64,000 nt of DNA, taken from positions 558,001-622,000 of the forward strand of contig MCFH01000011.1 of assembly GCA_002104945.1 (NCBI GenBank). Direction: 5' to 3'. Below are positions 18,308 to 25,319 of this stretch, piece after piece. Position 1 is the stretch's first letter. Each line of letters starts with the position of its first letter. This DNA is from Piromyces finnis finn. Taxonomy: Eukaryota > Fungi > Neocallimastigomycota. Made by a program: the position numbers and the translations under genes. The notes below the pieces were generated by a model, which did not search any database, was not told the DNA's origin, and saw nothing but the letters and a program-made list of their open reading frames with translations.

Positions 18308-20363
18308 ATGGATGAGTACAACGAAAAGAAAAATGAAGATCAACAAAATGTTGAAAATAATGAACAAAAAATAGATAATAATGTTAATGATCCATCTGTC
18401 CAATCTTCAAATGATGAAGAAGAAAATAAAATTAATAAAGTTGAAGATAATGTAAATGTTGAAAATACTGAAAATGGAAATGATAACATTGAAAATTCAA
18501 CTGATGCTAAAACTGAAGAACAAAAAAATGAAGAAGGGTAAGTAAATAGAAAAAGTTTTAAACTTTTTTTATTTATTTTTTATTTCTCAAATTTGAATAA
18601 AAAAAGAAAAATTTCATCTTTTTAGTTCTTAATATTAAAAATAGTTCTAAACGATAGAAATTTATCTAAATAATAATAATAGAATAATTTAACTAATTTA
18701 GTTTTTAATATTAATATTTTTATAACTATAATAAAAATTGCTATAATATAATATAAATATAATTTAAATATAAATGCATAAAATATAAATACATAAAAAT
18801 AAATATTACGATAGAAAAATATTTGTAGGAGGTCTTAATATTGAAACAACAGATGGTAAGATATAGTTTAAGAAAGAAAAGTTAAAGAATAAAAGCGTAA
18901 AGAAAATAGAAAAAATAAAAAAAAAAGAGTATATAGGCCTAATTGACTTAGTAGCAAATAAGCAAATAAGCAAATACCTAGTTTTAAAAATTTAGTCCAT
19001 AAATATTATTATTACTTAATAAATAATAAGAAAGATGAAATTTTTAAAATTAGTAAACCAAGTTTTTTTGTTTTAAATAAGTAACGGAAAAATATAATAA
19101 TATTAATAATTAAAAAACTTACGTTTTATTTTCCTTTTTTTTTCAATACTATTTTTTTATTTTATAATGCTATAATGTAATAGAAAATCTTCGCACTTAC
19201 TTCTCTGAATATGGTGAAATTTCTGATTGTGTTGTTATGCGTACTGATAATGGTATGTCTCGTTGTTTTGGTTTCTTAACTTTCAAGGACCCATCTGTTA
19301 TTGACAATATTTTAAAACAAAAGCATAAACTTGATGGAAAGGAAGTTAGTATAATATTTTTATGTATTTTTAAGAGATATTAATAGTAAGTATAATAATG
19401 AATATTAAATTAAAATTTAAAAATATAAATTAATAGATTGATCCAAAGCGTGCTATTCCACGTGAAGAACAAGAAAAGACTGAAAAGATTTTTGTTGGTG
19501 GTGTTAAGCCAGAAGTTACTGAAGAAGAATTCAAAGAATATTTCTCTCAATTCGGTACTGTTGTTGAATCTTCTTTAATGTTTAATAAGGATACTGGTCG
19601 TCCACGTGGTTTTGGTTTCATTACCTTTGATAATGATCAAAGTGTTGAAGCTGTTTTAGCTAAACAAGGTGAAATTATCATTAAGGAAAAACCAGTAAGT
19701 ATTTTAAAAAATAATATTGAAAAAAAAATGTAACAAAATAATATATCTAGATTGTGATAAATAGAAATTTAATTTAATTGAAACTATTGTAAACTAATAA
19801 TTAATGATTTATTTATATAATAGGTTGAAGTTAAAAGAGCTTTACCAAAAAGTAAAACTGCTAAAATGAATCATATGTCTCGTAGAAATAATTATATGAT
19901 GGATCAACGTAGAAGTTATGCCGGTCCAGTTCGTAATTCAAGATCAATGAATGATCCAAGATACATGAGAGGTGGATATAATGGAATGATGGGATATGGA
20001 CGTGATTATGGAAATAGAGGAAGTCGTGGAGGATACTATGGATACGGAAATGGTGGAAATTATGGATATGGTGGATATGATAATATGAATATGTACTATA
20101 GAAGCCATGGAAATGGTTCAAGTCAACAAAATTATTCATTTGGTTATAATAATGCTAGATATCAATATAATAACGGTGGTGGTCAAGGCTATGGCTATGG
20201 TCGTACAGGAGATTCCACCAATAATTATGGATACAATTCTGGTTATGGTAATTCCAGAGTTAATAATATGAATAATGGATTCTCTGGAAATGCATCAAAC
20301 GCAGTTCAAGGTCAACAATCACAATCTCGTAGTTCACATGGATATCACCCATATGCTCACTAA
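18308..20363 (+). CDS. HRP1: Hrp1/hnRNP A-D/Musashi-like tandem-RRM protein with G/Y/N-rich prion-like tail and C-terminal PY-NLS, 5 exons
   Basis: RRM1 KIFVGGL...SRCFGFLTF; IDPKRAIPREEQEKTEKIFVGGV; RRM2 GRPRGFGFITF; VEVKRA; ends in ...GYHPYAH like fungal Hrp1. Confidence 0.85.
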
Positions 20364-20690: not shown

Positions 20691-22701
20691 AGAAAGAAAA
20701 GGAGAAAACAGAGAAAAGAAAAGAAAAAATATTAAACAATTTTAGTATATGAGTTAAAGTTGTTATTTAATATTTATTTTTTTTTTTTCTTTTTTCTTTT
20801 TTTTGTCATTTTCATTATTATAATAATATTATTATAATAAGCCTTTTTTTTTTTTTTTTTTAATTTATTTTTTTTTTATCATGCTGTATTTTTTTTTTTT
20901 TTATATATATACATATACATATAATTTAAATAAAAAAAAATTTAAAAAGAAAAAAAAGTTCCAAAATTTTCATTATATTTTTAATTCCATATTTTAAGTA
21001 TTATGTATTTTTCATAATGATTTTCTTTGATTACAAAGTATCTAATAATAATAATAAATAAATAATGATTTAAAAAAAAAAAATGTATTAATATACAAAA
21101 TCAATATAAATAATGTTATTAAAAAAAAAAAAAAAAGTAATAATAATAATATCAATAATAATAATTAAATTTCTAGATAATATTTATTTGAAGTCCAACT
21201 CTATACAATAAAAAAAATAGAAACACTTTTTTTTTTTTCCATTTGACTAGTGTCATAGCACTAAATCTTTATAATTATAAAACTAAAAAATTTTAAACCT
21301 AAACCTAGATTTATATAAATGTATATAAATTGCAATTGTTTAATCCATACTATGATACTATGACAAAAAAAAAAAAAAAGAGAGAAAGAAAGAGAAAGAG
21401 AAAAAGAGTTTTAAAAGCAAATAATGCTTTTATTTAATAAACCTATTAAATGAAAAATAATGCAAACATGCTATTTTCAAAAATAGTCGTCTGCATTGTC
21501 ACAAATTTAAAGCCAATGAATTTCTTCAGTATTTCAATATAAGTGATAAGTATTTATTAAAGATTATATTGAAAAAAAAACAGAAATAATAATAATGATA
21601 ATGATCTTTTAAAATAATTTCTAAATAGTAAAAGATTAAAATAATGCTATAAAAATAATAAGATAAAACATTATTATATTTTTAAAAAAGTAAAAAAACA
21701 AGTAAATGAGAAAAAAAAAAAAAAAACATTTTTATTCAAATTATGAAAATTTAATTAAAAGAAAATTTAGCCTCCTGATTGAATGTTAATCTATCTTTAC
21801 ATTTTACACTGTAGTAGCTGTAATAATTTCACCATTAATTTTTCAGAATGGTTTAATTAATAATGAATGGTATAAAAAGTGAACATTAATTATTAATTTA
21901 ATATTGCCTTTGTATAATATATACTTTATTTATTCATAAAAAATCTATATTTTTAACATTTTTTCTTTTCCTACGAATACAAGATAACATTAAGAATTAC
22001 TATTCTTACACCGTCTTAAAAAAGATAAAGGATAATTTTCCGTATATATTCTATTAATCGACACAATATATAATATTATAATAATAATATACCCATTATA
22101 ATATATTATATTACACTTTTCTTTGTTTGATCATAGTGTAACAGTATATATGATTAACGTTGTATTATTATATATTATAATATAATGTAATATATTATTA
22201 AACATATTAATTAACTCCACAATAATGTACATTAAAAAATTAATTAATTTATTTAGAATCAAGTATTAAAAGTTCAACGTTTAATAAAAGCTGGCATTAC
22301 TATCAAAAAAGTATAAAAAGGACGGTTTCTCACCTATTAAAAAATATATATATCATAATATTGTTTAATTTATCAAATAAAATTATAAAAATGTAAGTAA
22401 AAAAAAAAAATTAAAGATTTAGGAATTTTTAGTATAAAGAATTTAATGTAATAAAATATATTTATAATATTTTAATTACAATTTTTAAAATTTAAAAACT
22501 AAAGAATAAGTAATAATGTATTTTCAGTATAATAAAATAAAAATTATCAGTTATATATATATATATATATAAAATTTTCAAGCAATAATTATTTTATAAT
22601 AATAAATCAAATATACTTTAAAATAAATTACACAATTATTGAATAAATACTAACAGTAGTTATTATAATAAATAATATATATAGATAATATTGAAATAAA
22701 G

Positions 22702-22845
22702 ATGGAAAACGATCAAAAGAAGAGAAAATTAAACAAGTAAATATATAGAAATAAAGCAATAAATATATAGAATTTCTTAAAAAAAAATAAATAATAAAAT
22801 AGAATAGAAATTTAAATTAAAAAAAGAGGGAAAGAGACATGAATG

Positions 22846-22890
<45 letters not shown>

Positions 22891-23477
22891 TAATTATAGT
22901 AAATTCTAACTAATTTATTAAATTACATTATTATAGCGAAATGTCTCTTAAGGGTACTCAAACTGAAAAGAATTTATTAAAGGCTTTCGCTGGTGAATCT
23001 CAAGCAAGAAACAAGTACACTTACTATGCTTCTAAGGCTAGAAAGGAAGGATACAACCAAATTGCTGATATTTTCGAAGAAACTGCTAACAATGAAAAGG
23101 AACACGCTAAATTATGGTTCAAATTATTAAACGATGGTATGCCAGATACCAAGACTAACTTAGAAGATGCTGCCAATGGTGAAAATGAAGAATGGACTAG
23201 CATGTACAAGGAATTCGCTGAAACTGCTGAAGCTGAAGGTCTTTCTCATATTGCTTTCCTTTTCAAAAAGGTTGCTGATATTGAAAAGTCTCATGAAGAA
23301 CGTTACCGTAAACTTCTTCAAAACTTAAATACTAATGCTGTATACATTAAGAGTGAAAAGGTTATTTGGGAATGTACTAACTGTGGTCACATTCACATTG
23401 GTGAAAGTGCTCCAGAACGTTGCCCAGTTTGTGACCATCCACAAAAGTACTTCAGAATCCGTGCTGAAAACTACTAA
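22702..23477 (+). CDS. rbr: Rubrerythrin (ferritin-like diiron domain plus rubredoxin domain), bacterial type; core ORF 22941-23477, with predicted 35-nt upstream exon 22702-22736 spliced to 22937
   Basis: [37 protein letters not shown] diiron ligands; C-terminal WECTNCG...CPVCDHP. The confidence given is for the rubrerythrin identity; the upstream exon is about 0.6 (see findings). Confidence 0.95.
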
Positions 23478-25319
23478 ATATAATAATTATTTATAAATTT
23501 AATATAAAATATAAATATATAAAATAACTATCATTATATATTAGTTTTATATTATTATATCAATTTTTCTGTAATATAAAGTACTACATTTCATTTTTAT
23601 AATATATAAAAAAAAAAATAATAAAAATAAAAGAAAAAAAAGTATAAATTTATATATAATATATATATTATATATTATATATAGCAAAATAGCAAATTAA
23701 ATAAAATAAAAATAAATTTATTCTATTAAAAAATTGAATTTTAAAAGCTTTTGTTTTTATTGTTTTAAGTAATTTTTAAAAAGTGGATTTTAAGAGGTAA
23801 TCTAATTTAGGTTTTAAGTTTTTTAATGAATTTATTTTTCAACAATTATAGCAATTTTATCAATTAGAGAAAATAAAAAATAAAATACAATTCAATGGCA
23901 TTACAATTAATAATAAGTTATAATTTTATTTTTTGTAAATTTTTTCATAATACAATAATATTTTTTACTTGTTTTTTCTATTTCTTTTTATCTACAGTTT
24001 ATTTTTTTATATGCATTTATAAAATAATCTATATCAAGTTCTATTTTCATTTTCTATTATGAAAAATTTTTATAATTTTTATGTGGTTGTTTCAATTGTT
24101 TCACCTTTCATTTTTTCCTTTCAATTTTCCAATATAAAATTTAATTATTAAAATTTTTTAATTTTTTCAAACGTTATTTATGAATATAATCTCTAAATTG
24201 TAATAATAATTTAGGTAAAAATGAGTCAATATTAATATTTACCATACCAAATATTAATATCTTTTTTTTTTTTCCATTTATTTATTATTTTAATCCAAAA
24301 AAATTCCAAAGTTTTATTGTAGGCATTATTTAATCATCCATAAACAGCATTTATAGAAATTAAAAAATAATACATTTGTCCCTTTTATTTCAAGAATTTA
24401 AATGTAAATGAATTAATGGTAAATTAGAAGCTTGAGAAGAAAATAATCAAGAAAAGTAAATCAATAATATAAATCAGAAATATTAGACCAAATTTTTTAC
24501 TTTTTAAATAAATAGCTTATTTATAAATAATATTTAACACTTTAAAAATATTGTAATAGGGTTAGATTAGTCTAAATCTTGAAATTTAAAGAAATATAAT
24601 GTTACCTATTATTTTACATTTTTAACTTTTACTATTCTTACATTGTTATAATTTATTTTATGTCAAATTTACATTAATTTTTTTGTGACTTTTTTTTTTT
24701 TTTTCTTATTATTCCTTTTTAAATAAAAGAAAAAATGTACTTTTTGTGTAACTTTTTTTAAATAAGTTACACAATAAATTTTCTTTTTTTTTTTTTAACA
24801 AAAACTTTAAGGTTTATTTTATTCCTTATTTGTTAAAAAAGAAAAATAATAAAAAATATTTAAAATAAAAATTTGTTAATAAAAAATGCTTACTTTTTAT
24901 TTTCTTTTCTTATCTAATCCCATTCCATGATAAAATTAAAAGTTGAAAAATGGTAAAAAAAAATGCATAATTATATAAAGATTGTAGTAGAACGTACTGG
25001 AACTTCATAAATAAAAATAATAATAATTTATCTTGAAAATTGTTAAATATTAGTCATTAGGCATTTCAAATAAAAAAAATATATATATCACTTTATACTT
25101 TCTTTATTTTAAAAGATTATACCTTAACAAATTCTTTAAAAATAAATAATAATAATTTTCAATTTTCAAAAAAAAAATATATATATATATAAAATAAATA
25201 TATAATACTTTAGTTAAATTAACATTTCTTATAAAACATATTATTCAATTACTAAATTATATATAGTTTATTATATAAAGTTTTTGTTTCAGTATTTATA
25301 ATCTAATAAGATAAATTAT

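Follow-up and report, generated by a model that had tools for sequence, protein, structure and literature searches.

The rubrerythrin gene of Piromyces finnis most likely consists of three exons, namely a first exon without coding sequence, a leader exon of 52 nt and the bacterial-type open reading frame (ORF), instead of the single exon under which it was deposited, and the leader, which encodes a conserved KKRK core, may provide the enzyme with a nuclear import signal. We place the probability of this explanation as a whole, a three-exon gene whose selected KKRK tail works as an import signal, at roughly 0.6. The spliced leader exon itself is real, and it is conserved in position, phase and peptide among the sampled genera of gut fungi. 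The gene model is hereby corrected for P. finnis, and likewise for Neocallimastix californiae and Neocallimastix lanati. More generally, the locus offers a clean and datable case of a transferred bacterial gene that was fitted to eukaryotic cell biology, with a spliceosomal intron at the old start codon and a mini-exon whose short linear motif has persisted throughout the sampled genera.

The gene and its exons in P. finnis

The window analysed here is a stretch of 64,000 nt of contig MCFH01000011.1 (assembly GCA_002104945.1), in which an exact match of the ORF identifies the rubrerythrin gene of P. finnis. The deposited model is a single exon of 178 aa that covers the bacterial-type ORF only (22941-23477, forward strand) and misses the leader. 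The ORF matches the Pfam Rubrerythrin profile PF02915, corresponding to the N-terminal ferritin-like di-iron domain, with E = 1.7e-34 (profile positions 1-137 of 137), and its C-terminal part matches a rubredoxin-like Cys4 domain (RUBY_RBDX / PF21349, E = 1.3e-14). Across the 20 fungal and bacterial sequences of alignment A1, residues E34, E67, H70, E97, E100, E131 and H134 (P0121 numbering) are invariant, as are the cysteines of the rubredoxin-like domain, C161, C164, C177 and C180. By comparison with the known D. vulgaris rubrerythrin (Rbr), with its Glu and two ExxH motifs, we take the seven Glu/His residues to be the di-iron ligands, and their conservation is consistent with a di-iron site. 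The nearest solved structure, PDB 9fj2 (178 aa), is matched over residues 1-178 (E = 1e-77). Judged by these matches, the P. finnis ORF is a complete classical two-domain rubrerythrin, with a predicted role as peroxide reductase. Its upstream neighbour on the same strand is a gene for an RRM-domain protein of 409 aa (L001 1-423, about 19941-20363 in the window).

The exons and introns of the gene are as follows (window coordinates).

22307..22392, + strand: probable non-coding first exon (5'UTR), placed from homologues and sequence, 5' limit not fixed
22393..22684, + strand: probable 5'UTR intron, 292 nt, GC 10%, GTAAGT...TATAG, placed in P. finnis from its sequence
22685..22736, + strand: leader exon, 52 nt, comprising 17 nt of UTR and 35 nt of coding sequence, ATG at 22702
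22717..22728, + strand: KKRK codons AAG AAG AGA AAA (NLS-like core), from sequence and orthologues
22737..22936, + strand: phase-2 spliceosomal intron, 200 nt, GC 11.5%, GTAAAT...TATAG
22937..23477, + strand: coding part of exon 2, C GAA followed by the ORF from ATG 22941, stop at 23475-23477, 3'UTR beyond

The first exon begins with the conserved motif AAAAGTATAAAAAGG and has the donor AAAAT/GTAAGT at its end. Homologues of this exon, including the donor, are found in Anaeromyces robustus (L002, where it ends at 1687 before GTAAGT) and in Neocallimastix (L007), and it is seen spliced in four transcripts (L006, L011, L013 and L014). The 5'UTR intron carries a branch site, TACTAAC, at 22648-22654; the equivalent intron has been removed in the Neocallimastix transcripts L011, L013 and L014, and it is retained in the transcripts L005, L008-L010 and L036. 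At the start of the rubrerythrin locus we also observed a conserved AAAAGTATAAAA(A)GG motif, often after an A run (22307-22321 in the window and at about 1598 in L002), which recurs at the 5' ends of L011, L039 and L041, among contigs from Piromyces, Anaeromyces, Neocallimastix and metatranscriptomes. The motif is TATA-box-like but lies inside assembled transcripts, so that a conserved element of the 5'UTR or of the promoter is a possible reading. In A. robustus, a long (TTTA)n microsatellite precedes the first exon by about 400 nt (L002, about 1150-1235).

After its ATG, the leader reads GAA AAC GAT CAA AAG AAG AGA AAA TTA AAC AA, up to 22736. It is followed by the GTAAAT donor at 22737-22742, a branch site TTCTAAC at 22904-22910, which is 27 nt before the acceptor, and a TATAG that ends at 22936. 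When 22736 is joined to 22937, a frame of 191 aa without a stop results, in which 13 residues are added ahead of MSLKG... A first-pass annotation of the locus had placed the leader ATG at 22702, the donor at 22736/22737, the branch site at 22904-22910 and the acceptor at 22936/22937, with phases that join to an open 191-aa frame, and each of these is found exactly there. It had also put the leader ATG 200 bp upstream of the bacterial-type start; the real distance is 239 nt, and 200 nt is the length of the intron. Within this intron P. finnis has an uninterrupted run of 41 A (22846-22886), which the introns of the other species do not contain.

In composition, the leader resembles coding sequence. 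Its GC content is 22-26%, with 26% for the leader in P. finnis, compared to 10-12% in the flanking P. finnis introns, and its lysine and asparagine codons (AAG twice, AAA once, AAC three times) follow a preference that is also seen in the ORF (AAG 14 vs AAA 4, AAC 8 vs AAT 6). In both respects the leader is closer to the ORF than to the introns, which bears out an earlier remark on its use of AAC and AAG. No ATG comes before that of the leader in the inferred mature mRNA. The leader ATG has an A at -3 and a G at +4, and given this position and context, any mRNA that contains the leader should yield mainly the 191-aa form. Of the sampled words of 22600-23560, a share of 0.47-0.65 is found in four sequencing runs from the same organism (X1-X4), where arithmetic on the inferred exon coordinates gives an expected share of about 0.66 for the exons alone and about 0.89 for unspliced DNA from the leader onwards; these shares are consistent with P. 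finnis contigs that lack the introns.

Splicing of the leader exon in related gut fungi

In a word-based protein search, six near-identical fungal clusters came first, ahead of proteins from gut Clostridia/Oscillospiraceae at 70-73% identity. Several of the fungal rubrerythrins are 192-195 aa long, and their extra residues are homologous to the predicted P. finnis leader; the 191-aa P. finnis product itself was absent from the 90% clusters returned by this search. The leaders of the deposited models and environmental contigs are listed below.

A. robustus, ORX80610.1: MSSDQQNKKRKLDNE
Piromyces sp., AWI66881.1: MENDQQLKKRKLNNE
Neocallimastix 'constans', KAL6607089.1: MSTEQDSKKRKLNNE
Environmental contig P0003: MENDQQIKKRKLNNE
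Environmental contig P0004: MSSDQHLKKRKLNNENE
Environmental contig P0006: MSTDQQLKKRKLNEE
Environmental contig P0124: MSTEQQIKKRKMNEE

The three deposited proteins are orthologues at 89-94% identity that share the leader and the intron, and the leader sits unremarked in all three models; the P. finnis leader is two residues shorter.

An orthologous leader exon is present in the contigs L002, L007, L015-L024, L026-L035 and L042-L047. Together with the phase-2 intron it occupies the same spot in a Piromyces-like species, in A. robustus, in three Neocallimastix genomes and in a further lineage. The coding intron was found at this spot in six genomic lineages, always in phase 2 and four bases before the old start codon, while its length ranges from 144 nt (L026) over 162 nt (L002), 200 nt (P. 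finnis) and 201 nt (L007 and L016) to about 300 nt (the L042 lineage), and its sequence has freely diverged among the lineages. In A. robustus, the genome reads ATG AGT AGT GAT CAA CAA AAT AAA AAA AGA AAA TTA GAT AA/GTAAAT ... TTATAG/C GAA ATG, and two contigs from separate public runs (L003 and L004) read GATAA/CGAAATG, the exact homologue of the 22736/22937 junction; since these contigs lack the introns, we read them as transcripts. The same comparison of genomic and spliced sequence can be made in Neocallimastix (genomic L007, L015 and L016 vs spliced transcripts L008-L014 and L036), in the Piromyces-like species (genomic L026-L035 vs spliced transcript L005) and in the further lineage (genomic L042-L047 vs spliced transcripts L040 and L041). 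The coding intron has also been removed in L038-L041, and the spliced contigs include rumen metatranscriptomes.

Among random 11-codon stretches of intron-like composition, 21% are open, and 0.45% of the open ones contain K(K/R)RK or KR(K/R)R. Taken together with the same architecture in five or more other lineages and with the spliced transcripts, these odds exclude a chance origin of the leader ORF and its basic core.

In the 178-aa models of N. lanati (KAG4088732.1) and N. californiae (ORY49678.1) the leader was missed, and yet the exon is present in both genomes (L015 and L016), 246 nt upstream of the called start, and spliced transcripts with the leader encode a protein that is otherwise identical to these models. 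The short model therefore has the look of an annotation habit, and the error is shared with P. finnis. We rejected leaderless transcripts as the source of the 178-aa calls on longer contigs: those examined were genomic and carry both the leader exon and the intron, with L025 being too short upstream to tell. A pattern scan of metagenomes with the start of exon 2 matched two Neocallimastix contigs, too few for isoform proportions.

Two variants among the relatives would give only the 178-aa form. In an A. robustus contig (L006, from SRR9694920), the GTAAGT donor of the first exon is joined straight to exon 2, so that the leader is skipped; aligned to L002, it covers 1657-1687 and then 2204 onwards, with canonical GT..AG sites, and its first ATG is the old bacterial start, giving a leaderless protein of 178 aa. 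In a Neocallimastix contig (L037, 1-342), an alternative donor, AATT/GTAATA, is used about 110 nt into the coding intron, and the leader frame stops early and acts as an upstream ORF. A leaderless isoform made by exon skipping is therefore possible, although L006 is a single assembled contig and splicing noise could explain it. The first-pass annotation had envisaged a second isoform started at ATG 22941. A leaderless form is indeed possible, but with L006 at hand, and with the leader ATG being first in the mRNA and having A at -3 and G at +4, skipping of the exon is a more likely source than initiation at the inner ATG. A further A. robustus contig (L004, compared to L002 1729-1847 and 1969 onwards) has another upstream non-coding exon, spliced with GTATAG...TGTAG, which indicates either alternative splicing of the 5'UTR in this species or two start regions.

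One could use these variants, together with the GenBank model of 178 aa, to argue that the deposited P. finnis model is right, and that the stretch upstream of it is an untranslated leader or an upstream ORF that is coding only in the relatives. However, P. finnis has preserved the splice signals (donor, branch site and acceptor), the phase, the open frame and KKRK, its 6-nt deletion in the leader keeps the frame, its leader codon choice is like that of the ORF, and the models of N. californiae and N. lanati are equally short despite the leader exon and intron in their genomes. We consider this alternative very improbable; the leader exon is very probably in use in P. finnis.

Selection on the KKRK peptide and its possible role in nuclear import

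The KKRK core is identical in all nine leader peptides (9/9). In the seven leaders for which coding DNA was compared, its codons differ only synonymously (AAA/AAG), with AGA fixed, and the position after the core is Leu (TTA or CTA), once Met. The residues ahead of the core vary (E/S, N/S/T, D/E, Q/H/D and L/I/N/S). The flanking N/D-N/E-E residues are conserved as well in alignment A1. Across the orthologues the leader is 13-17 residues long, 13 in P. finnis, and its changes in length are multiples of three (-6 nt in P. finnis, +6 nt in L038), which keeps the frame. Nucleotide identity of the leader relative to the intron was dropped as evidence, since AT-rich sequence aligns at 55-80% regardless, and the case was instead built on frame, codons and peptide. 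On these grounds, the leader is under selection at the protein level, with the KKRK core kept by selection. Frame and KKRK are retained in every orthologue seen, an outcome in favour of the first-pass annotation, which had named their loss as a refutation; the earlier proposal that this particular fungus had gained the leader is correct as to the exon being real, but the exon is common to the Piromyces, Anaeromyces and Neocallimastix genomes sampled.

The monopartite classical import consensus is K(K/R)X(K/R), and KKRK at 22717-22728 fits it, in agreement with the first reading of the sequence. In an AlphaFold model, made with an alignment of orthologues and bacterial relatives, the protein is a confident helical bundle with a rubredoxin-like domain, whereas leader residues 6-15, at a pLDDT below 50, fall outside the confidently modelled bundle. 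The leader is thus probably a flexible, free tail outside the fold. According to the mechanism that we propose, the 191-aa enzyme would combine an intact di-iron four-helix bundle and a C-terminal rubredoxin-like domain with a flexible N-terminal tail of 13 residues, and KKRK would be bound by importin-alpha as a monopartite import signal. Import would enrich the nucleus, in which DNA is at risk from H2O2 and iron, in a small peroxide reductase, and skipping of the leader exon could provide a leaderless form that would be spread through the cell. Of the roles considered for the core, this is the most likely one; from the motif and its setting, we find it somewhat more probable than not that KKRK works as a nuclear import signal.

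Several points speak against the import reading. At about 21 kDa, the monomer is probably small enough to enter the nucleus unaided, and lysine-rich tracts are common in AT-rich genomes. Furthermore, the reductant of rubrerythrin in eukaryotes is not known, the nucleus included. The small size and the lack of a known redox partner fit a different role for KKRK in an exon that is real and translated, such as docking of a redox partner, binding of nucleic acid or acidic lipid, or turnover or N-terminal processing. Conservation shows that the leader peptide matters, not what it does, and the conserved residues next to the core place acidic flanks around the basic patch. On the other hand, the conserved core comprises exactly four residues, all basic, which match the import consensus, it is found in a flexible tail at the terminus, where import signals usually sit, and no alternative motif was recognised in the leader. 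A role of this other kind is possible, and we hold it to be rather unlikely.

Another conceivable destination is the hydrogenosome, with the leader acting as a mitochondrial-type presequence. Presequences of this type are longer (upwards of about 20 residues), basic and hydroxylated, free of acidic residues, and form an amphipathic helix. The leader has only 13-17 residues, among them three to five Asp/Glu, and the folded domain comes directly after it. Rubrerythrin has been reported in Trichomonas hydrogenosomes, and a genome survey of the gut fungi counts rubrerythrin among hydrogenosome-related domains; still, the leader is too short and too acidic, and we rejected a hydrogenosomal presequence as very improbable. 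A peroxisomal signal of the PTS2 type, checked by eye, did not fit.

Returning to nuclear import, we found neither a localisation of any fungal rubrerythrin nor a description of a rubrerythrin with a nuclear signal in the literature searched, within which the nuclear-targeting reading of the leader is new, and it is plausible. If KKRK drives import, strictly anaerobic fungi would be using a nuclear enzyme of bacterial origin to protect very AT-rich genomes against peroxide, and the question would be raised of what reduces rubrerythrin in the nucleus. The idea is directly testable with simple fusion constructs. One could also speculate further, that gut fungi send a bacterial-derived rubrerythrin to the nucleus, which would make it the first nucleus-directed rubrerythrin in any organism, that the signal was invented as an exon after the transfer, and that this exon is a cassette, giving a nuclear, DNA-protecting enzyme when included and a cytosolic one when skipped. 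This extended proposal is tentative, and we would not expect all of it to hold.

Origin of the gene and comparison with known systems

In a tree with 113 bacterial sequences, the fungal rubrerythrins form one clade (SH-aLRT 100) with Clostridia-like matches around it, which fits a single acquisition. The gene had been described as horizontally acquired from the outset, and the tree agrees; transfer of rubredoxin/rubrerythrin into anaerobic gut fungi has in fact already been published. The tail would date from the interval between the transfer from a Clostridia-like donor and the divergence of the gut-fungal genera sampled. Within the phylum, as sampled here, the leader exon is ancient.

Relative to bacterial rubrerythrin (9fj2, and the D. 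vulgaris Rbr structures 1RYT/1LKM), the fungal ORF has the same length and the same four-helix di-iron bundle and Cys4 domain. The fungal gene differs in having a spliceosomal intron immediately ahead of the old start codon, an added N-terminal tail of 13-17 residues, 5'UTR exons and AT-rich eukaryotic flanks. The rubrerythrins of Trichomonas, Entamoeba and Spironucleus are likewise laterally acquired bacterial peroxide scavengers in anaerobic eukaryotes. The Trichomonas enzyme is placed in hydrogenosomes by the one localisation reference seen here, unlike the nuclear reading considered above, and we found no basic import-type tail described on the rubrerythrin of other anaerobic eukaryotes in the literature searched. 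With signals of the SV40 large T type (PKKKRKV), the fungal leader shares a four-residue basic core in a flexible terminal segment. In contrast to these, KKRK of the fungi, as a putative signal, has no upstream proline, has acidic neighbours, and belongs to a protein whose small size would let it diffuse through pores.

Among the bacterial rubrerythrins, one of 242 aa (P0007, from an ENA contig) has its helical domain duplicated over about 60 residues, with the segment EKEHAKxWFKLLH present twice.
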